The notes beneath the pieces were generated by a model, which was not told the origin of the DNA, ran no database searches, and was given only the letters and a program-made list of their open reading frames with translations. A program made the translations under genes and the position numbers. Positions 17,976 to 52,947 of a stretch of DNA of 64,000 bases are shown here, piece after piece; within the stretch, counting starts at the first letter, position 1; every line of letters begins with the position of its first letter. The stretch comes from Fimbriosthenelais zetlandica (Eukaryota). The DNA is taken from positions 26,102,001-26,166,000 of the forward strand of contig OZ365116.1 in assembly GCA_977030845.1 (NCBI GenBank). Direction: 5' to 3'.

Positions 17976-30514
<12,539 letters not shown>

Positions 30515-38917: not shown

Positions 38918-39934
38918 ATCCTAATACAACACCTGATTAAGGTTCATTGTGATAACCTGAAACATTCCATTATATTCCACTGAGTTAGACCAGGGTAAAC
39001 CCTAGTTAATTTAACCTTTGCGGGGATTTAATATTTGATTGAAGGAGGAAGCTTGGAGGTGAATTAAATACACTTAGTAGATGAAGAAGGCTGCCAGAAT
39101 CCGTGATTAGTTCTAATCAATGATTGCTACCTGCTACCATGGTGCCCCCCACCTCCACCCCCCCCCCCCCCCCTCCAGCCAGACTAATGAATGAAACAAT
39201 GGCTTGTAATTCCAACTCTACCATTAACTGAAGCCATTTGTAAACTTGTTTTTTATAATCAAGGAACCTCGAGTCATTGAGCCACTACTTAAGTATAATA
39301 GAAAGTATTTATAAAATAAACATTTAAGTAAATTACTTCCTGTGGAAAGGTCGTCAATTTGGAAAGATTTTAAAAACACTATAGGCTACGTGTGTTTGAA
39401 TAGGTCGTAAATGTGAAAAGATTTAAAACATTATAGGCTACGTGTGTTTATGTAACACACTTTGGTAATTTAAGCACGAGTGCGTTACAAGTATGTAAGA
39501 GCAGCAGGTGTAAAATATACCTGGTAATATGATCTACATGTATTCATCTTAATATTATAGACATTATCAGACCATGACGAGCGTTTTTAATTCATATTTA
39601 ATCATAAATCAGGACCGTGACTTGTATTTTGTTCTTTGTGTTAATCTACATGGAGTGAGGTAGTTTTTTGTAGTTGTTTAGGTTAGTTTAGTTAGTTTAG
39701 ATTAGATGGTGTATACAGGTGTTTACACCATGAGTGGGATGGGCGTGCTGCGTACATCCGGGCATTGTTTGGTATTAATTAGCTGCCCCGTGAGGATTAG
39801 ACTTATCATTAAACTATTGATACGTTCAACCATCGCCTAGCGACATCCAAACTATTGTCATCTTACCTCATCTCACTCCTTCTATCTTACCTTCTATCTC
39901 TTAGCTTCCATCTCTTAATTACCTTCTATCTTAC

Positions 39935-40480
39935 CTTCTCTCTCTTCCTTCCATCTCTTCCTTCCATCTCCCCCTTCCATCTCTTCCTTCCATCTCTCCC
40001 TTCCATCTCCCCCTTCCATCTCTCCCTTCCATCTCCCCCTTCCATCTCTCCCTTCCATCTCCCCCTTCCATCTCTCCCTTCCATCTCTCCCTTCCATCTC
40101 TCCCTTCCATCTCTCCCTTCCATCTCCCCCTTCCATCTCTCCCTTCCATCTCCCCCTTCCATCTCTCCCTTCCATCTCTCCCTTCCATCTCTCCCTTCCA
40201 TCTCTCCCTTCCATCTCCCCCTTCCATCTCTCCCTTCCATCTCCCCCTTCCATCTCTCCCTTCCATCTCTCCCTTCCATCTCTCCCTTCCATCTCTCCCT
40301 TCCATCTCCCCCTTCCATCTCTCCCTTCCATCTCTCCCTTCCATCTCTCCCTTCCATCTCTCCCTTCCATCTCTCCCTTCCATCTCCCCCTTCCATCTCT
40401 CCCTTCCATCTCCCCCTTCCATCTCTCCCTTCCATCTCCCCCTTCCATCTCTCCCTTCCATCTCTTCTTTCCATCTCTTA
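39935..40480. repeat. 13-bp pyrimidine-rich minisatellite (~40 copies; ccttccatctctc/ccttccatctccc)
   Basis: Explains the four repetitive ORFs between 39855 and 40497 (13-aa period = 3x13 nt). Confidence 0.95.
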
Positions 40481-40698
40481 CTTTCGACTTTAAACATGAT
40501 TTATGGAGACCTACTTTTGATATATTTTTCTCTCCTGTTTTTGCTCCATAATAAATGACTCAGGGAAGTTTTAACTTTACGCGGCCTGTTTTTCCACCTT
40601 TATCTACCATCTCACTTCACGTCTATTTTGTCATCGTGAAGGTTCACGGTTGCCTTGGTAACGTTGGTAACCTGTAACAATCACAGGTATTACAGACA

Positions 40699-43600
40699 AT
40701 GGGCTGCACGCCTTCCCAGCCACAGGCAACTGGTACTAAACTATCTAATTTTAAATTAAACTTAATTTATTCCATAAACTTGAACCCTGTATATATCTTT
40801 GCATGTTTTCTTTCTAAGCATGTGTACTTTGAACATTCACAAGGAATAAAGTATTTGTCTTGTGGGAAATTAAAATGATTGAGATTATATTCAGAAAGCG
40901 GAACCCAAGTTGTTCCCACGATACTCTAAGAGAATGGAATGTGGAATAGACCAATAGTGAATTAATGTCAGTAGTTATTAGGGCAATATAATCCTGGGTG
41001 GCATGGGATGGGATGGCAAGGGACGGGCAATCTTCACTTTCAATTGCTGGTTAACGGGCCAAATTCCAGATTTTTTGGGAGGAATTTAATACGAATATAA
41101 ATCACATAATATATAGATCCCCCAAATAGGTCAAGCCAAGGTCTGTAGTCAAACCCATCCCCTCACGAGGTGAGACAAATGTATGTTCTCACACCTTTGA
41201 CAACACCTTCCGGTTTTTTATTCCGTTTAAAAATCTCCATCCTTCACGCATGGTGTATAGGTGTATCAGAATATCTCCCCGTGTCTTGTGCTAACTGTCT
41301 CATCTCAAGCCTCTCTGATTCTTCTAAGAAGGAAATTACAGCTAAAAAAATGACCATAGCCTTGTCCACTGATTGTGGGAACATTGTATGATATTGCTGG
41401 GTGGAGAGGTTCTTGTTCATGCTATGTGTTTAGGTTCGTCACATAAATCTCTAATTAACTTTTATTGTTATTTAACTCAATTCTTCTCTTGTTTCTAAAC
41501 GTCTATCGTCTTCAATATTAAAAAGCAACCGTCCATGTAATAATGATAATAATCTATTATCTCTAATTCATCTGTTATTATTATTTAGTTAGTAATAGGC
41601 CTATGCTTCCGGACATTAAGCGATGGTGATTTTTATCATAATATAATTCTTCCTTTGATGTTATTTTTTGATGAATCATTCTGTGATTTATGTTCAGTAT
41701 TAAATGACTCTACATTTCTATTCCAGCTAACACTGGTCCGGCGGCCAAAACCAAAGCGACGCGGGCCCCGAACAAAGCGACGCCGGCCGCGACTAAAACG
41801 ACGTCACATGACCGGAAGGTGACGTCACATGACCGGAAGGTGACGTCACGGGACCGGAAGGACAAGATGACGTCATTAGAGGGTGGTGACGTCATGCGTG
41901 ACGTATTGAGGGGTCAGGTGGAGTCGGTGTCTGACCCGCCACCTAGCGTCTTTAGAGTGTACCTCGCCTCGTCCTCTACAGGTGAATAAATGACAGACAA
42001 TAACATGATTGTATTAGGCCTCATCCACTAGGTCGCAAGGGGGAAGCGATCACCGGCGATCAGCGATCCCTAGCGATCAAATCACTCAATATTTAGAATG
42101 TTTAATATTTTGTGCGATTAAAAGCGATCACCAATGTACCTGGCGATCAGATCGCTTATATGGATGAACATGGGCGATCTGATCGCTGGCACTTCATCCA
42201 CATCCATGTGATCGCTTCTGATCGCTAATAACACGATCACAAGCAATCTCTTGCCCCTTGTGACCTAGTGGATGAGCCCTATATATGTCAGATATTTTAA
42301 CATGATTCTATGTCTGATATTTTAACATGATTCTATGTCTGATATTTTAACATGATTCTTTGTCTGATATTTTAACATGATTCTATGTCTGATATTTTAA
42401 CATGATTCTATGTCTGATATTTTAACATGATTCTATGTCTGATATTTTAACATGATTCTATGTCTGATATTTTAACATGATTCTATGTCTCATATTTTAA
42501 CATGATTCTATGTCTGATATTTTAACATGATTCTATGTCTGATATTTTAACATGATTCTTTGTCTCATATTTTCCATATTTCTTATTAACATCTTGTGAT
42601 TTTCCCCCACACAGATATGTGTATAGAGCGCGCAGTGCTGGCCAAGAAGGTGTTCCCGAGGCTGAGAGAATACTGCCGGACCACCTACAACACCGACCTA
42701 CAGGTAGGCCTATTATTATTCTAAAACTTATACAAAAGAATAAAAAATCGCGGAGACAATTTATAGACTTTTTTAATCTAGTTTTATAGGCGGGACCGAA
42801 GACTGCTTTGGTTGTTCGCACTATTAGCTCAAAGCTTTTACTTTAAGCTTTTGGAGCATGACAATATTTTACCCTCCCCCCCCCCCCCAGCCCCTTGACC
42901 CCATGTACATACTTTCACCATTTTAGAATGCCCCCATTCTGTCTATAGGTAGATGGATGGTGTTTAGATGTGCATGAATTGAGTTACCATGCTCACAATG
43001 AGCCCTTCTGTTACCTGGTAATTCATCTTTGGTAACAGACTTTCTGTTAGTCGGTAATTGATCCTTGTTTTGTCAACCCTTCATGTGGAACATCTTCCAT
43101 GTATAAAGGAACTTATGTGGAACTCCGCCAACTCTCCACCTCTCTGCTCACATCCTGGCGTGACGGAGGACCCCACCCTCTCTAATGGCTCACTTTACTT
43201 CACTTCTCGTTCACTTTAATTTTTGTTCACTTTTAGGTCGTTGATCTACGCTTGGGTGCGGAGTTCTCAGACGATCCCACAGCCACCCCGCTCAGACTGG
43301 AGGAGATAAAGAGATGCCAGCAGCTCTCACTGGGTCCAACATTCGTGGTGAGTTTAAACCATGAAACATGAAACGTTTAAAAGATGAAACATAATAAGCA
43401 ACCTTCCCTTTAATAAAATTTATAAAAAACATAATCTGTTTATCATGATGACAGGGTTTATGTTCACTAATTATCCCTCAATCCATCTCATCCTTTTACT
43501 GATTTAAACTTCAATATTTCCTCAGTACGTAATAAGATGTTTTACAATTAGTAAGATGTTTTATAATTAGTGTGATTATGTTTATTTTAGTTGTTAATCG

Positions 43601-46600
43601 GGGGTAAGTACGGCAGCTCCGTCATACCCACCCACATCCCGGCTCGTCAGTTTGAGGTGATCTGCTCGTGTCTCGCGTCTAGCGGCCAGGTGGCGCTGTT
43701 AGACATGTGGTATAGACGTCATGATGACGTCACACCGCCCGTGTACGTCTTACGTCACACGGTGAGCGGGAGTTGGAGCCAGGCGGCGTCTGAGTGGCGT
43801 GAGGCGGCTGGTGAGCTGAGACGGACGCTACAGGCGGGCGTACGTCGGGGCGTACAGGTGGGCAAGATGGAGGCCGAGGTGGAGGCCACATACTTCACGT
43901 CAGGTAAGGCGAACCATCGCCAAACATCGCCAAACATCGCCAAACATCGCCAACCATCGCGAGCTTCAATCTAAATATGATACCTTTAATATGGAACCCA
44001 CAAGCCCACCATTTAATTTTATTTAGAATTTACTTGCCTTTTCGAAATTAGTTATACTTGTTAGGGGCCTTAGGGGCCATCTCCTAAATTCACAAGTGTC
44101 TTTTCTGAATTTAAGTGCTTTAATTTGTATCCAGACCACCACCTCATGTCTTAAAGTGTGACAAACAGCCGCTGAAATATTGCTAACTGACTTAAATTTT
44201 AAAAGACTTAAAGTTAGGAAAAAATTTGCCAATTTGTGAATTGATATAATTTGCAAAATGACCAAAATAATCACGTAATGACCAATGATGACAAGAATCT
44301 ATGCTCACATTAGATGTTTGATCAATTTAATTTAAACCAGTTAGTCTTGTGCCGTGAATCGTGCCTTGGTTGTGTCTACAGCCACTTAAAATTAATTACC
44401 TCATTACTAACATTCCTCCTTAATGAAAAAATGTTAATGACCTGCCAATCATCTTCATACATGATAATCATGTTTGTATTACGTTGTAACTCTTTATTTC
44501 CATGTTTATATTACGTTGTAACTCTTTATTTCCATGTTTATATTACGTTGTAACTCTTTATTTTCTTCCTCGTCCATCAGAGTTAGAGTTGGAGGTCGAG
44601 GCTGGCATCCTCGCCGATCCTCGCGCCAGTTCACGATGTTTGATGTTCCGTCGTAAACTGACCAACATGAACCTGAACCATGAACTGGCTGGTCACTTTA
44701 TAGATGTAGATCAATCAGGTGATGTAGACACCCACAAACAGTCACTATGTGAACACATGGCTGAACAAAAGATCCCATCAAAGATCCACTCCACACACAT
44801 ACACAGCTTCACGGTAGAGTGGAGTGACGAGGGTGGAGTCAGTGAGGCGCGACATGGCGACTACCTACATCAACTCTGTGAGACATTTAACACCAGCATG
44901 GTTCACGTCATAGACGCCAGTATCAAGACGCGACGTCATGATGACGTCATCACACACACTGATGACGTCATGACGGAGGTGACGCACCACGTCAGGGAGT
45001 GTAGACGCCGGAGTATACCACTCACCGGATGTGACGTCATACTCCAGCGTCTGCGTCATTACGTCACAGATGACGTCACAGAACCTCTGATACTGTATGG
45101 TCAGCCTGGAGTGGGGAAGTCGTGTCTCATGGCCAAGGCGGCGTCTCTAGTAGGTTCATCTTAATATCTAGATGTTTAGATTTGGAATTAGAACATTATA
45201 AACATTATGAAATGTTAATTAGTGCCAGTAATGTCCCGAGCACCGAGTTAATGGACACCCCCACCGACTGACACCAATCTACACTCATTATGTCTTTATT
45301 TATAGCTGTGTGTTTATCAGATTAACCTGGTTTTTATAATTATTTAAAATTCGTCATTTGATGATTCATATTCTTACCTCAGACCTGTTCCTTTACTTGG
45401 ATATGTTTATATTTTGAGATATCAAAGGTCAGCCATGTCTGTGGTGAGAGGCATGGCATAGTGCCATGCTAATTGAGATGAGCAGGCCATTCTCTACCGA
45501 TAGCGAGTTTCCTCCAGTAATATTAAGTTTATTTACCCTTTCCAGGTACCTCAGTGGTTGGAGGACGACCCCGCACCGTCAGTCGTCATCCCGCGGTTCC
45601 TGGGCACCAGCCCCGCCTCCTCCTCCCTGGAGGGCGTCCTCCGGTCTATCTGTCTCCAGCTCCACCTCATCTACTCCCCCTCCTCCCCCTCCTCCCCCTC
45701 CTCCCCCTCCTCCCCCTCCTCCCCCTCCCCCTCCTCCCCCTCCCCCTCCTCCCCTAACCTCCCCCACGACCTAGAGCAGCTCAGTGAGCACTTCCTCCAG
45801 CTCCTCTACGACTCCCCTCCTCATCTCTCTATCATTATCCTCCTGGATGGCCTGGAGACCCTCCTCCCTGCCCCTCACCCTGCAGGGAGCTCCCTGTGTC
45901 TACCCTCCACCCTTCCTGAGAACGTGAAGCTGATCGCCTCGTGTGTGGACACGGAGGAAGGCCGGGCGATCCTTAAACAACTGAGGAAAAATAAGATAAA
46001 TAAAGATGAGTTTGTGGAGGTGCTGGGCCTGGATGGGGAGGCGTGTCAGAGGTTGATGAGGTCCTGGGTGAGTAATGGTCGCCGGGTACTCAACCCGCCA
46101 CAGTGGCGAGTAGTGGATGAGTTACTCATACAGGGAGCTACTCCTCTATACCTGAACCTCCTACTAGAGCACATCATGAGCTGGAGGTCTGATACCAGCT
46201 TACTGGAGGTCCCCAGCACGGCGGGGGGGTTGATAAAAAACATGGTGGACCAACTAGAGGAGAAACACGGCAAGAACATGACGTCATCCGTGCTAGGTAT
46301 GCTACTGATGACGTCATACGGCGTCACGGAGAGCGAGGTGGAGGATATGCTCAGCTTAGACGAAACAGTGAGTTTAACTTTCACATTCCATACAGTCAAA
46401 CAAGCCCTCATATTTATTAAATGAAATATGTTTTCAGTTTAAGTATTTGACACCTCAAAGTTAATTAAAACATAATTGGGTTAAATATATTTTTTATATG
46501 TGACTTATAGTTATAAATTAGCCTGATTAATTGCCTTGATTTGATGATAATTGTTTTATATTATAACAGTATTTTTTGTTGTTTTAGGTGTTGATGAATA

Positions 46601-49600
46601 TCTTCACGGATTACGTGCCGTCAGTTCGCCGGTTACCCAGCGTTCTGTGGTATAAGCTGCTGTCTGATCTCCGCCCCCTCATCACCTACACCTCTATAGA
46701 CGGTCACTCTGTCATTAAACTCACAGACAGACTGTGTGAGACAGAGTTAAGACAGAGGTACCTGTCTACATGGGTGACGGCGGTCGGCAGCCGCGTGAAG
46801 AACCTGATGTTAGACTATTACACGGGAGAGTGGAGTGAGACTGAGAAACCATTTATATACCTCCCTGATCAACCCCGACTACTGGGACTAAAGACTGACT
46901 CATCCTCTCATAGATACGTCCCTACACAACCCACCCTCACTAAATATACTGATACTAGAGGTGAGGTGAAGTGGATCATCAACACGAGGAAGGTGAGGGT
47001 GCTCAGCACGGTGCTCTATCACGATGCTCTATACTGGGATAATGAGGAGGCTCTATTCCGCTTTATGAGACTCGTACCGTTTAACTTTGAGCTGCTCATG
47101 GCTTTGTTGATGATGGGTGAGTGGAGGCAGCTGATGAACGTGTTAAACATCAGATCAGTGATTGATGATGAGGATGGGGAGTTTGAGAAGAGACAGTTAG
47201 TGGTGTATACTCGATGTCTGACGAGTGTGAGGGAGCAGCTCATACACAACCCCTCCACTCTCATCATACACCTCATAGGTCAGCTGATTGGTCAGTATAA
47301 CTTCCTCACACACCCCACCACCTTAATACGCCAGGCTGATAAACAAGATGGCCGCCAGTTCTGTGGGTTGGTGTGTCCCTACCAGCAGTTACCGCTCGCC
47401 GGTGAGGTGAACTATCTACACGCCACCCACCACAACAATGACGTTACCAATGTTACCTTCACTGGTAACGTCATGTTTACAGTCTCTGATAAACTGGTAG
47501 GCGTCGCTTTTGACACTTACGGTAATCAGACTAAGATAGTGACAAATGTACGGGTACAGGGTATACCTAGAGGTGACTACGTTAAACACATGGAGGTGAT
47601 CGGGGTGGAGAATCAGTATGGTGTTCACGAGGAGGAAGATGAAGATTATGATAAACTATTATCATCTGTGAAGATTGTACTGGCTTTATACCATCAACCT
47701 ACAGTGGTCATCATCCGGGCATCTGATGGTCAAGTCTTACTGACCATAGACTGTACGAAACATATTCCTAATGATAGCCAGTCACAGCTCAGAGACAGTG
47801 ATAGCCAGTCACAGATCACAGACAGAGACAGACAGTCACAGATCACGGGACTTGAGGTCATCTCCCCGTCTCTACATGAGAGTCAGTTACTGGTCAGTCT
47901 GAACCATGGGTCATCTATACATGTGTACAGCTGTGACAGTGGTCAGTTCATACACTCACTGTCCACTAGTGACCACTCTATACTAGACATCACTCAGATG
48001 GACGATGGTACCTTCTGTGCTCTACTACAAAACGGTGAGATAACGCCTATAGAAAACATACAAAACATGAAACCTAAACACATGAAACCACAGAACATGA
48101 AACCACAGAACATGAAACCACAGAACGCCTACCAGAAGGCAACCACGCCGTTACCAACGCTCAAACACGGTAACAACATCAAGGCGTGGAATGTGGGTAA
48201 GTGGGGGGCACTCGGCAGTGAGGTGTTGGTGCTCAGTACTGAATCTGGTGATTTAATGTCGATATTTGGAGTGAACCCCTCACTGTCACACTCCCTACCC
48301 CCCGTGACGGCCGCCATGACACTCCCCTGTCACACCCCCGCTCACTCTATCGACACGGATGTCAGGGGTTTCAGTTCACGTCTGGTGGTAGCCCTGGCTC
48401 TCATCTCCACACAGTCGTGGGTGTATATGGTGAAGTTTGAGGTGGGCAGGAATAGACAATGTTCTACGACACTCGCTGCTAGTCTGAAGACGCGACTAGA
48501 TGACGTACGACTGTATGACGACGTCTTTATAGGACGTCACATGAACGCCGTCATGGTGGGTTCATGTGGTAACAAGAATGATGGTTCATTCTACATGAGG
48601 AAACTAGCCATACTAGATGTACATAGCTCACCCATCGACATCATGAGGCCCTCAGCTATCTGTGAGTATACTTATAGTCATTTATACTTAAATGAAACAA
48701 TATGAAATGAAATAGAAATTACCAACAAATCTGGGAGCCTGTTTTCTTGCTAACACCAAATATTCTATAGGAATTTATTTAAGTTTTATTTGGCTTTGAT
48801 CATTGACTTATTCTCGTTTGGTATTTTTAATATCAGTGAGTTTATTTATTTATTTATTTATGTGATATTTTCAGTATCAGGCACCCAGTCTAACCGCCTG
48901 GTAGCCACCGTGGCTAGTGACGGCTCATGTCGCGCCTTTAACTTGACCACTGTCCAGATGTCCAGTGATAACATCACATCGTTTGAGAGGATGGAAGGAC
49001 CGGTCCATTCTATCACGGCAGGCGTGTCACTAGCTGCTCTCACCGAGAAAGACAACAGGTGAGGCGAAATGAGTGATTAATTATAATGAAATATCATCAT
49101 GATATAACTGAAAGTGACGTTAATCTTATATCTTCTATTTATTACAGCCATGTGGCGGTATTTGACATACAGACGGGCTCTCTGATGAAGGACTTCCTCC
49201 ACTCTCAGTCCGTCACGTCATGTTGTTTCTCCACCAGTGAACGTTACCTGGCAACCATAGACACGACTGGTCACCTCTGTGTGTGGGACATCCTCGTCCT
49301 GGCCAGCACCGTGGAGATCTCTACACCTATACTCTCACGAAACTTACAGGTAACTCATTAACTTATATCTACACCTATACTCTCACCAAACTTACAGGTA
49401 ACTCATTAACTTATATCTACACCTATACTCTCACGAAACTTACAGGTAACTTAATTAACTTATATCTACACCTATACTGTCACGAAACTTACAGGTAACT
49501 CATTAACTTATATCTACACCTATACTGTCACGAAACTTACAGGTAACTCATTAACTTATATCTACACCTATACTCTCACGAAACTTACAGGTAACTTATT

Positions 49601-52493
49601 AACTTATATCTACACCTATACTGTCACGAAACTTACAGGTAACTTAATTAACTTATATCTACACCTATACTCTCACCAAACTTACAGGTAACTTATTAAC
49701 TTATATCTACACCTATACTCTCACCAAACTTACAGGTAACTTATTAACCTATATCTACACCTATACTGTCACCAAACTTACAGGTAACTTATTAACTTAT
49801 ATCTACACCTATACTCTCACGAAACTTACAGGTAACTCATTAACTTATATCTACACCTATACTCTCACCAAACTTACAGGTAACTTATTAACTTATATCT
49901 ACACCTATACTGTCACGAAACTTACAGGTAACTCATTAACTTATATCTACACCTATACTCTCACGAAACTTACAGGTAACTCATTAACTTATATCTACAC
50001 CTATACTCTCACGAAACTTACAGGTAACTTATTAACTTATATCTACACCTATACTGTCACAAAACTTACAGGTAACGTATTAACTTATATCTACACCTAT
50101 ACTCTCACCAAACTTACAGGTAACTCATTAACTTATATCTACACCTATACTCTCACGAAACTTACAGGTAACTTAGCAACTTATATCTACACCTATACTG
50201 TCACGAAACTTACAGGTAACTTATTAACTTATATCTACATCTATACTCTCACCAAACTTACAGGTAACTTATTAACTTATATCTACACCTATACTCTCAC
50301 CAAACTTACAGGTAACTCATTAACTTATATCTACACCTATACTCTCACCAAACTTACAGGTAACTCATTAACTTATATCTACACCTATACTCTCACCAAA
50401 CTTACAGGTAACTTATTAACTTATATCTACACCTATACTCTCACCAAACTTACAGGTAACTTATTAACTTATATCTACACCTATACTCACCAAACTTACA
50501 GGTAACTTATTAACTTATATCTACACCTATACTGTCACGAAACTTACAGGTAACTGATTAACTTATATCTACACCCATACTGTCACGAAACTTACAGGTA
50601 ACTTATTAACTTATATCTACACCTATACTCTCACGAAACTTACAGGTAACTCATTAACTTACATCTACACCTATACTCTCACCAAACTTACAGGTAACTC
50701 ATTAACTTACATCTACACCTATACTCTCACCAAACTTACAGGTAACTCATTAACTTATATCTACACCTGTACTGTCACAAAACTTACAGGTAACTTAGCA
50801 ACTTATATCTACACCTATACTCTCACAAAACTTACAGGTAACTTAGCAACAACACATCAATATTTCCCCCCTAAATATCGCTTGAAATGTTGTTTGATAT
50901 ATTATTAAGACTACAATGTAAATCTGTCATTTTCAGGGCAGCAAACATTGGATGTTCTGGTGCAGTAACAGCCAGTTCCTGGTTGTTTCTGATTGCGGCA
51001 CACAAGTAACAGCTCACCCAAAGACAAAGGAGGTGATAGAGATAGACAATGTCCCCACCCCGGGCTCCACCCCGGGCCCCCTACAAGACGTAATCATGAA
51101 TAATCACGGTGACATCCTGTGCCTGAGTTCAGACGGTCGAGTCCTGACCACCACCAGGCCTGGTGACACCTCCCACACCTCAACACTGGACATTAAATCA
51201 GGCCACTCCATCTCTAAATACGGTCCGTCCATCAGTAAGATGGGTGTGAGTGGAGCTGACACATTAATGTTGGTGGGAGGGACACTGCTCTGTTATAAAC
51301 TCACATCTCACAGTATTATACCGCTATATAAAGGTCTGTCACATGATGCTCACATTGTGACAGCAGGGTCTACTATAGCTGTCATTAACCACGATCAGCT
51401 GTCAGTACTGACAGACATGGATGACAGCTGGATGGATTATAACCACCATATTAACACTAACATGGTGAGTGTGACAGGTGATGGCAGGTATGTGGTTATA
51501 GTAGCTGACATTAAGACAGTTAAACTACTCCGTGTGTCAGATCATGTACAGCTGGCCTCCTTCATCTTCATGGTGGATATATCAGCTGTCAATATCAGCA
51601 GTGACGGCTCGTTTGTCATCATTGGCGGGGTGGATGGCCGATTATATACATACGTTATAGCTGATCCTGATGAACCTAGTCACGATGAACGTATAGCTAA
51701 CCTCCCGAGTCGTCAACAGCCAGTCGTACTTCAGATAGAACGGCTACATGACTTACGTTATAAGACGTTACGTCACATGACGGTAGACATGGAGACCAGC
51801 TCATTCGGCGGCAGTGACAGCGAGCTGTCAACTACTGACAGTGACAGTGACAGTGACAGCGAGTTTGGTTCATCAGATGAAGATGAGGAGGAGGAGGAGG
51901 AGGAAACATCAGCTACAGATCAAAATAAAGCTGGATCTACTCAACAAAAAAACATTAAAAAAGACAGCGGACAAGTAGACAGCGCCAGGCCTAAAGCCAT
52001 GGTCAATGGTAAGACAGGGACAGACAGTAAGACAGGGTCAGACAGTAAGACAGACAGTAAGACAGACAGTAAGACAGGGACAGACAGTAAGACAGACAGT
52101 AAGTCAGACAGTCAGTCAGTGTTGATGCCTCTACCTAACGGTACAGTCTGTCTAGCTCCCGTCACGTACCGTCAACCAGCCCTACAGACAGGATATAAAA
52201 AGAGGATAAATAAACTAAATAACAGATTTACTGACGTGGATAAAGCTGACAAACATCACTGTCACACTGACAGCGGTAAATCATGCTGTCACACTGACAG
52301 TAAACCCTCCTGTCACACTGACACTGACAGTGACAGCAGGCCTGTATGGACAGCACCCCTGTCACGTGACACTAGACGTGCCAGCTGCCGGTTAACAAGT
52401 CTACAGTCACGTAAAGGTACAAGTGTCACCTCACCTCAACCTAACCCTACTGACGGCCGAGTGTCGGCATCTAAAGCCTGTGTCATCTCATAA
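40699..52493 (+). CDS. NACHT and WD-repeat domain protein (NWD1/NWD2-like): DUF4062/TIR-like N-domain, NACHT, WD40 region; 11 exons, ~2069 aa
   Basis: Exons 40699-40732, 41727-41981, 42615-42703, 43237-43347, 43591-43903, 44581-45149, 45546-46367, 46588-48661, 48875-49058, 49148-49349, 50937-52493 (6210 nt, phases consistent). N-domain FRVYLASSSTDMCIER..VFPRLREYC..VVDLRLG..LEEIKRCQQLSLGP. Walker A LYGQPGVGKS; PRFLGTSP; Walker B IIILLDGLE; TPLYL; GVTESEVEDMLSLDE; RRLPSVLW. WD-like repeats (DTTGHLCVWDI, ISSDGSFVIIGGVDG). The first exon is the least certain. Confidence 0.88.
42017..42279. mobile_element. MITE family C (263 bp) with GCGATC subterminal motifs, in NWD intron 2
   Basis: TIRs GGCCTCATCCACTAGGTCGCAAGGGG / CCCCTTGTGACCTAGTGGATGAGCCC, with TA on both flanks. 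Confidence 0.8.
42291..42575. repeat. 25-bp tandem repeat (~11 copies; gatattttaacatgattctatgtct)
   Basis: Period 25 (catgattcta at 42301, 42326...). Confidence 0.95.
44073..44220 (+). mobile_element. MITE family A, diverged partial copy
   Basis: ggggccatctc...tgtatccagaccaccacc..aaagtgtgacaaacagccgctgaaat..gctaactga. Confidence 0.7.
49319..50850 (+). repeat. 48-bp minisatellite (~32 copies) comprising an exon end and splice donor
   Basis: ctacacctat at 49321, 49369, 49417...; the unit is ATCTACACCTATACTCTCACGAAACTTACAG|GTAACTCATTAACTTAT. Confidence 0.95.
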
Positions 52494-52947
52494 TACCAGT
52501 GTCACCTCACCCCAGCCCACGTCTACTGACGACCGAGTGTCGGCGTCTAAAGCCTGTGTCATCTCCTAATACCAGTGTCACCTCACCCCCCCCCCCCAGC
52601 CCCCCCCCCCCCCACCCCTCACCCCAACCCACGTCTACTGACGGCCGAGTGTCAGCATCTAAAGCCTGTGTCATCTCATAATACCAGTGTCACCTCACCC
52701 CAGCCCACGTCTACTGACGACCGAGTGTCGGCGTCTAAAGCCTGTGTCATCTCCTAATACCAGTGTCACCTCACCCCCCCCCCCCCCCAGCCCCCCCCCC
52801 CCCACCCCTCACCCCAACCCACGTCTACTGACGGCCGAGTGTCAGCATCTAAAGCCTGTGTCATCTCTTAATACCAGTGTCACCTCACCCCAGCCCACGT
52901 CTACTGACGACCGAGTGTCGGCGTCTAAAGCCTGTGTCATCTCCTAA
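52420..52947 (+). repeat. Tandem duplication (76/112-114 bp alternating, 6 copies) of the last codons and stop of the NWD-like gene
   Basis: GCCTGTGTCATCTC(A/C/T)TAA ends at 52493, 52569, 52681, 52757, 52871 and 52947. Confidence 0.95.

Follow-up and report, generated by a model that had tools for sequence, protein, structure and literature searches.

A divergent NWD-family STAND ATPase gene with a conserved C-terminal CaaX box and a predicted farnesyl anchor

Gene model and exon layout

The DNA considered here is a 64,000-nucleotide window of eukaryotic sequence (Fimbriosthenelais zetlandica, contig OZ365116.1), drawn from a 447-Mb assembly. Its subject is a gene for a STAND ATPase of the NWD (NWD1/NWD2/QUI-1) family whose predicted product ends in a CaaX box, CVIS, that is conserved among orthologues and recurs across the family. 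The mechanism of NWD1 and NWD2, which are STAND ATPases conserved among animals, is poorly understood, and the roles attributed to them include purinosome assembly, SERCA2 function and endoplasmic reticulum (ER) stress, and nematode chemosensation.

Joining 11 GT-AG exons on the forward strand between positions 40699 and 52493 yields an uninterrupted frame of 2069 codons plus a stop (Table 1), in agreement with the product of about 2070 residues that an earlier note on this DNA had proposed. The spliced product begins MGCTPSQPQAT and terminates SKACVIS. The letters bear that note out. They contain ATG GGC TGC ACG CCT TCC at 40699 with a GT donor after base 40732, a phase-1 join to exon 2 across an AG acceptor that follows a pyrimidine tract and ends at 41726, and the terminal codons TGT GTC ATC TCA TAA at 52479-52493. 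Reading from the N terminus, the predicted protein opens with a TIR-like DUF4062 domain, which is followed by a NACHT NTPase and an NWD-type winged helix; next come a helical linker and degenerate WD40 propellers, and a disordered tail of ~260 residues closes the chain with CVIS.

The exact end of exon 10 is uncertain because the donor used is the first of a series of similar donors in the following intron. Intron 10 is taken up by ~32 copies of a 48-bp repeat (49320-50845), each with a donor-like cag/gtaact.

Table 1. Positions in the window of the exons, protein features, and DNA motifs of the NWD-family gene.
Feature	Position	Strand	Description
X-box-like RFX motif GTTGCCTTGGTAAC	40649-40662	+	37 bp upstream of candidate ATG
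Candidate exon 1	40699-40732	+	MGCTPSQPQAT, phase-1 donor ctg/gtacta; predicted myristoyl-Gly2/palmitoyl-Cys3 start
Exon 2	41727-41981	+	Low-complexity basic stretch, then onset of DUF4062/TIR-like domain (..RVYLASSST)
Three 21-bp repeats	41800-41861	+	Each with TGACGTCA (cAMP response element, CRE) and ACCGGAAG (ETS-like)
Exon 3	42615-42703	+	N-terminal DUF4062/TIR-like domain, continued
Exon 4	43237-43347	+	N-terminal DUF4062/TIR-like domain, continued
Exon 5	43591-43903	+	Remainder of N-terminal DUF4062/TIR-like domain
Exon 6	44581-45149	+	Onset of NACHT domain; Walker A GQPGVGKS at 45099-45122
Exon 7	45546-46367	+	Remainder of NACHT (Walker-B-like IIILLDGLE) and NWD1-type winged helix
Exon 8	46588-48661	+	Helical linker and degenerate WD40 region; orthologue fragments P0001 (48% identity) and P0002 (38%)
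Exon 9	48875-49058	+	WD40 blades
Exon 10	49148-49349	+	WD40 blades; WD40-type Pfam matches
Exon 11	50937-52493	+	Final propeller blades (NWD2_C type), disordered tail, CaaX, stop
Disordered C-terminal tail (predicted), ~260 residues	51705-52478	+	From AlphaFold2 (AF2) confidence (pLDDT) and orthologue alignment
Tandem array, 76-bp unit (188-bp super-unit)	52418-52947	+	Species-specific; copies last ~25 codons and stop into 3′ flank
CVIS codons and TAA	52479-52490 and 52491-52493	+	Farnesylation-type CaaX box, conserved

Family membership, paralogues, and orthologues

The earlier assignment to NWD-like STAND proteins holds up well. In blastp searches, the spliced protein matches the NWD2 proteins of Lottia, Lingula, Biomphalaria, Patella, and Haliotis with E values of 1e-117 to 1e-125 (~1e-124 for Lingula, Lottia, and Patella) and ~30% identity across ~1000 residues, and its nearest named homologues are lophotrochozoan. 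When spliced, exons 2-5 align with the DUF4062/TIR-like motifs of named NWD proteins (DM.IER..L....P.L...C and VDLR.G; RVF.SS..D...ER..L....P.L...C...VD.R.G). The P-loop region, with GQPGVGKS in exon 6 and IIILLDGLE in exon 7, is spanned by the blastp alignments to NWD2; the Pfam NACHT model gives no score when exons are scanned singly. The NWD1 winged helix model PF25469 matches the exon-7 open reading frame (ORF) alone with an E value of 9.9e-6 (25.9 bits versus a cut-off of 27), and the NWD2 C-terminal propeller model PF23586 matches exon 11 alone with an E value of 2.1e-6 (27.6 bits versus a cut-off of 33).

The host genome carries at least 15 loci of this family, some with stops. Among them is a canonical NWD2 tandem pair (G000 C1:70153904-70158085 and C1:70172657-70176787) that is 61% identical to Lingula NWD2 and of which both copies terminate ..SSACILQ; at least 13 further loci are spread over other chromosomes. 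Because the canonical pair sits in the same genome, the gene in the window is a divergent paralogue, which adds a member to an established family.

Orthologous exon ORFs with 38-50% identity occur in three other assemblies: ENA ERZ25767047 (its locus hereafter L014), ENA ERZ26222911, and Logan ERR14368248 (L015). The L014 ORF carries a PF25469 match, and the orthologous proteins P0122 and P0123 carry PF23586. The L015 contig begins in exon 5, and L014 is the sole orthologue with which the upstream DNA could be compared. A query with the exon-6 ORF for further orthologous N-termini returned no match.

Conservation of the C-terminal CaaX box

The last-exon ORFs of the window, P0122, P0123, and L014 align end to end with an overall identity of 40-50%, and all four terminate in CVIS followed by a stop. 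Every alignment column is invariant across CVIS (fraction, 1.00), compared with a fraction of 0.12 over the 16 preceding residues and 0.00-0.01 in low-complexity stretches of the tail. Among species, the CVIS codons differ at third positions (TGT/TGC, GTC/GTT/GTA, ATC/ATA, and TCA/TCC), and the three species for which DNA is available use TAA, TAG, and TGA as stops. Because the peptide is invariant among variable neighbours while third positions and stop codons have changed, it is the peptide that is selected, and these codon patterns show the CVIS box to be under purifying selection. The CaaX box proposed in the earlier note is consequently on firmer ground than when it was put forward. That note had also proposed that orthologues be aligned to check both terminal motifs, of which CVIS is kept in every sequence aligned and Gly2 is absent in L014.

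The setting of the box is also that expected of a farnesyltransferase substrate, with Cys at -4, aliphatic residues at a1 and a2, Ser at X, and a flexible linker before a retained motif. The AF2 model of the last exon has beta strands to about residue 250 (blades with pLDDT of 75-88), and residues 252-513 of the ORF, which are rich in Ser, Thr, and Asp, have pLDDT below 50. Because confidence stays this low from residue 252 onward, the CaaX box caps a predicted disordered tail of ~260 residues. Two blocks within the tail are conserved, namely ..MPLPNGTVCLAPVTYR..RFTDV and VWTAP..RKGTS.

One stretch of the tail is peculiar to this lineage. A His/Cys-rich insert, HHCHTDSGKSCCHTDSKPSCHTD, derived from a 24-bp repeat, lies at 52254-52323 (about residues 431-462 of the last-exon ORF); it brings four extra cysteines and is missing from the three orthologues.

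The box extends well beyond the orthologues. Among relatives of at least 1200 residues found with exon 8, 34 of 50 end in C-x-x-x (Cys frequency, 0.02), and the box is present in 39 of 120 mostly named family members. The NWD2 proteins of Patella, Haliotis, Argopecten, Lingula, Aplysia, and Lottia end KS[RQ]ACVIS, that of Daphnia ends SKACVIS, and the NWD1-like proteins of hemichordates, echinoderms, and amphioxus mostly have C-x-[IV]-L ends. This recurrence in mollusc, brachiopod, Daphnia, and deuterostome relatives shows that the CaaX box is an ancestral trait of the NWD family, common to most relatives outside the insects, and is not peculiar to this gene. Among all 121 matches, Ser occupies position -7 in 36 of 40 boxes and is usually preceded by Lys, which gives the consensus K-S-x-x-C-a-a-X. 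This Ser may be a phosphorylation or recognition site beside the lipid.

The motif in the window has also been copied locally. CVIS and its stop sit in the first unit of the species-specific tandem array (Table 1), and each unit re-encodes SKACVIS and a stop, which recur ~7 times in the 3′ flank. As the unit length of 76 bp is not divisible by 3, consecutive units are mutually out of frame. The possibility that the CVIS unit is a dispersed repeat or transposon fragment was ruled out, the matches elsewhere in the genome being to its poly-C part only. The array was sought in L014 and L015 and is absent from both. Because it is local and missing from these loci, the array represents a recent duplication of 3′ coding sequence and not the origin of the motif.

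The N-terminal start and anchoring at both ends

The most substantial alternative is the full model implied by the earlier note, in which the ATG at 40699 is the start codon, Gly2 carries myristate, Cys3 carries palmitate, a farnesyl group is attached to the C-terminal Cys, and both ends of the protein are tethered to membranes. If the ATG at 40699 is the true start codon, then MGCTPSQ fits the consensus for N-myristoyltransferase, with Gly2, a small uncharged residue at position 3, Ser at position 6, and no Pro at position 7. The start of G-alpha-i, MGCTLS, differs from it at one position. Counting both strands, the window has 2,637 ATGs, and none but this one reads MGCxx[ST]. It is also the first ATG past the X-box shared with the orthologue, and it is flanked by A at -3 and by G at +4. 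The acceptor of exon 2 is preceded by a good pyrimidine tract, and from there 47 codons without a stop lead to Met59.

N-terminal extensions of 85-170 residues headed by MGxxxS moreover recur in the NWD family. The anthozoan proteins P0166, P0171, P0172, P0176, P0215, and P0220 have such starts on extensions of 120-170 residues, mostly with a polybasic run after the motif, and P0119 (an amphioxus protein that starts MGIGASVR) and P0130 belong to the same set. The Montipora protein P0172 combines an MGIVVSRK.. start with a C-terminal CQIL. In these relatives, the MGxxxS starts constitute a predicted myristoylation signal.

Several observations run counter to an MGCTPS start in the present gene. 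In L014, the ATG located 52 bp beyond the X-box encodes MFC, and the orthologous layout accommodates no MG exon; the MFC ORF is short, and it is either closed by a stop ahead of the better donor or spliced to exon 2 by way of a weak one. An alignment of the first exons of the window and L014 as homologues is unconvincing beyond the X-box and ATG-nnn-TGC-AC, and was set aside. The donor of candidate exon 1, ctg/gtacta, is weak, and a better one, cag/gtatta, precedes the ATG. Within 3 kb upstream of exon 2 lie 25 ATG mini-exons, this one and 24 others, that could join exon 2 in phase 1, and for this reason in-phase splicing is uninformative and was rejected as evidence for exon 1.

Residues 1-58 align with nothing, and relatives begin at the position of Met59, that is, 6-12 residues before an h-L-x-G-x-L motif, which is the site of the ATG at 41867. 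Exon 2 has in-frame ATGs at 41867 and 41895, both at the relatives' start position, on which the earlier note was silent. At the position of 41867, L014 has an aligned Lys-Met with a ACCGGAAGTG site just upstream. The ACCGGAAG beside Met59 is kept in L014 in another codon phase, and this difference in phase indicates that the ETS-like motif is conserved at the level of DNA rather than protein.

On balance, we give a slight preference to the exon-2 Met59 (ATG 41867-41869) as the translation start, which would make a protein of 2011 residues. The MGCTPS exon, with its product of 2069 residues, is possible but has clearly less than an even chance of providing the start. The model with lipid at both ends, which depends on that exon, is likewise tentative. 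Even if it is correct, the description of the protein as "constrained, membrane-looped" in the earlier note is not supported. The putative N-terminal linker comprises 58 residues of low complexity and the C-terminal one ~260 disordered residues, and because both tethers are long and flexible, the core would be left free if both ends were lipidated.

Alternatives to a prenyl anchor and to an intact gene

A second alternative is that CVIS is kept for a purpose other than prenylation, such as docking or degradation through the C-terminus, and that the protein is soluble. The near-invariant Ser at -7 hints that the motif reaches further than CaaX itself. Other observations weigh against a farnesyl-anchored NWD protein as well. 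Hexapods and most crustaceans have lost the box, and because hexapod NWD2 does without it, the box is dispensable in some lineages. N-terminally tagged QUI-1 of Caenorhabditis elegans has been reported to be largely cytosolic (PMC8871372), which disfavours the box as a universal membrane anchor. The family assignment itself is touched by the fact that the single-exon Pfam scores fall slightly below the curated cut-offs. However, what the family keeps is the C-a-a-X pattern alone, with Cys always exactly at -4, and the residues at a and X change but stay among those tolerated by prenyltransferases (S, L, Q, M, and I). Retention of the pattern while these residues vary points to a prenylation box rather than a fixed docking peptide, and we consider a non-prenylation function improbable.

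That the locus is a pseudogene or a paralogue in decay within repeat-rich DNA, with terminal motifs that have no function, might be suspected from the many internal tandem repeats, the degenerate WD40 region with few Pfam matches, and the expanded NWD family of the host (at least 15 loci, some with stops), but it is highly improbable given that 2069 codons are open across 11 exons with canonical introns and that three other species retain orthologues (exon ORFs with 38-50% identity in three assemblies) that are conserved in blocks and end at the same stop.

Weighing these points together, we estimate the probability at roughly three in four that the locus is an intact, fast-evolving NWD STAND ATPase paralogue in which the CVIS at the end of the tail acts as a farnesyl anchor.

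DNA motifs upstream of and within the gene

The X-box-like sequence GTTGCCTTGGTAAC (GTTGCC-NN-GGTAAC) has no second exact match in the window, and none occurred in 100 shuffles. Its counterpart GTTGCCATGGTAAC, at L014:3891-3904, precedes the orthologous gene on the same strand, where none is expected from shuffles. On the basis of this conserved upstream X-box, the gene is suggested to be under RFX control and perhaps expressed in ciliated cells.

Two further observations concern the surroundings of this motif. Another X-box copy in L014 lies at 20884-20897, on the other strand and ~3.8 kb beyond the stop of the gene. In the window, ~43 copies of a 13-bp repeat, CCTTCCATCTCTC, occupy 39922-40478, directly upstream of the X-box and exon-1 region.

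The three 21-bp repeats of exon 2 are either a coding linker (TSHDRKV three times) or a promoter or 5′ untranslated region element. The idea that their CRE and ETS-like sites form an internal promoter in exon 2 is weakened by the enrichment of TGACGTCA and its half-sites in several coding exons. This palindrome occurs 15 times in the window versus 0.46 expected, and 11 of the copies are in exons of this gene (41800-46316; exons 2, 5, 6, and 7). Half-sites have a density of 6.1/kb in exons, ~0.2/kb in introns, and 0.4-0.5/kb in the orthologous loci, in which no full site was found. Because TGACGTCA is read in two codon phases, as D-V and as [MV]-T-S, its enrichment is a DNA-level, lineage-specific phenomenon.

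Proposed mechanism and significance

Farnesyltransferase would modify the Cys of CVIS, farnesyl being the expected lipid because X is Ser. RCE1 would then remove -VIS, and ICMT would methylate the new C-terminus at the ER. The box is adjoined by no polybasic stretch and no nearby Cys, and because no polybasic or palmitoyl signal stands beside it, the ER and Golgi would be the default location. The protein would thus hang from the cytosolic face of endomembranes by a long flexible tail. Holding the ATPase on a two-dimensional surface might favour ligand-triggered oligomerisation of the NACHT domain and signalling through the TIR-like head.

A broader proposal would join the observations on both termini and on the upstream DNA. 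Perhaps the whole NWD1/NWD2/QUI-1 family was ancestrally prenylated through K-S-x-x-C-a-a-X, and the lipid, whether farnesyl or geranylgeranyl, and not the WD40 domain, sets the location of mouse Nwd1 at the ER. N-terminal myristoyl (or myristoyl and palmitoyl) extensions might then have been added independently in anthozoans, in amphioxus, and possibly in this gene, resulting in anchoring at both ends, with RFX control in ciliated cells in the present case. Ciliated cells sort myristoyl and farnesyl cargo by means of UNC119 and PDE6D. So comprehensive a scheme is speculative, and we think it unlikely to be right in all its parts.

A search of ~8.4 million full texts found NWD1 or NWD2 together with prenylation or myristoylation only as incidental co-occurrence, with no box described, and the PRENbase paper does not, in its main text, mention NACHT, WD-repeat, or KIAA1239 proteins. 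As far as could be established, a conserved prenylation box on a STAND ATPase would be an undescribed form of lipid-anchored NLR-like protein. The box would offer a simple, testable account of how NWD1 and NWD2 are targeted to membranes. Mislocalisation of these proteins would be expected both from C-terminal tags and from inhibition of farnesyltransferase.

Comparison with known systems

The closest comparison is with molluscan and brachiopod NWD2, which has the identical domain order, the C-terminal motif S-[KR]-A-C-V-I-S, and the NWD2_C propeller, which the present gene matches below the curated cut-off. The present gene differs in its identity of only ~30%, in a longer (~260 residues), repeat-rich tail, in degenerate WD40 repeats, and perhaps in an N-terminal extension of 58 residues.

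Mammalian NWD1 and C. elegans QUI-1 belong to the same STAND family. QUI-1 acts in ciliated sensory neurons (PMC8871372), a role that fits the X-box described above. Mouse Nwd1 resides on the cytosolic face of the ER, for which an N-terminally tagged C-terminal fragment suffices, and the authors of that study attribute ER binding to the WD40 domain (PMC11897295). We predict instead, by analogy with the present gene, that a CaaX box would explain the siting of this C-terminal fragment at the ER surface. Both proteins are nevertheless unlike the one proposed here as they have been described, Nwd1 because its ER binding is credited to WD40 and QUI-1 because of its largely cytosolic distribution.

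For the box itself, the best precedents are CIIS of yeast Ras2 and CVLS of H-Ras, which are substrates of farnesyltransferase and not of geranylgeranyltransferase I (PMC11152559, PMC9231725); the main texts of these two papers make no mention of CVIS itself. Together with farnesylated immune GTPases such as GBP1, these proteins share with the NWD product a C-aliphatic-aliphatic-Ser sequence at the extreme end after a flexible linker, and specificity for farnesyltransferase only would be expected here too. In contrast, the cargo in this case is a STAND ATPase of ~2000 residues rather than a small GTPase, and there is no adjacent palmitoyl-Cys or polybasic second signal.

Other STAND immune ATPases are held at membranes by lipid, including plant RPS5-type proteins with MGG/C starts and S-palmitoylated NOD1, NOD2, and NLRP3. 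In these N-acylated or S-palmitoylated NLRs, the acylation is N-terminal or internal. We know of no described case of an NLR-like protein with a C-terminal prenyl group. If the reading of CVIS as a farnesyl anchor is true, NWD1 and NWD2 would be the first prenyl-anchored NLR-like members known to us.

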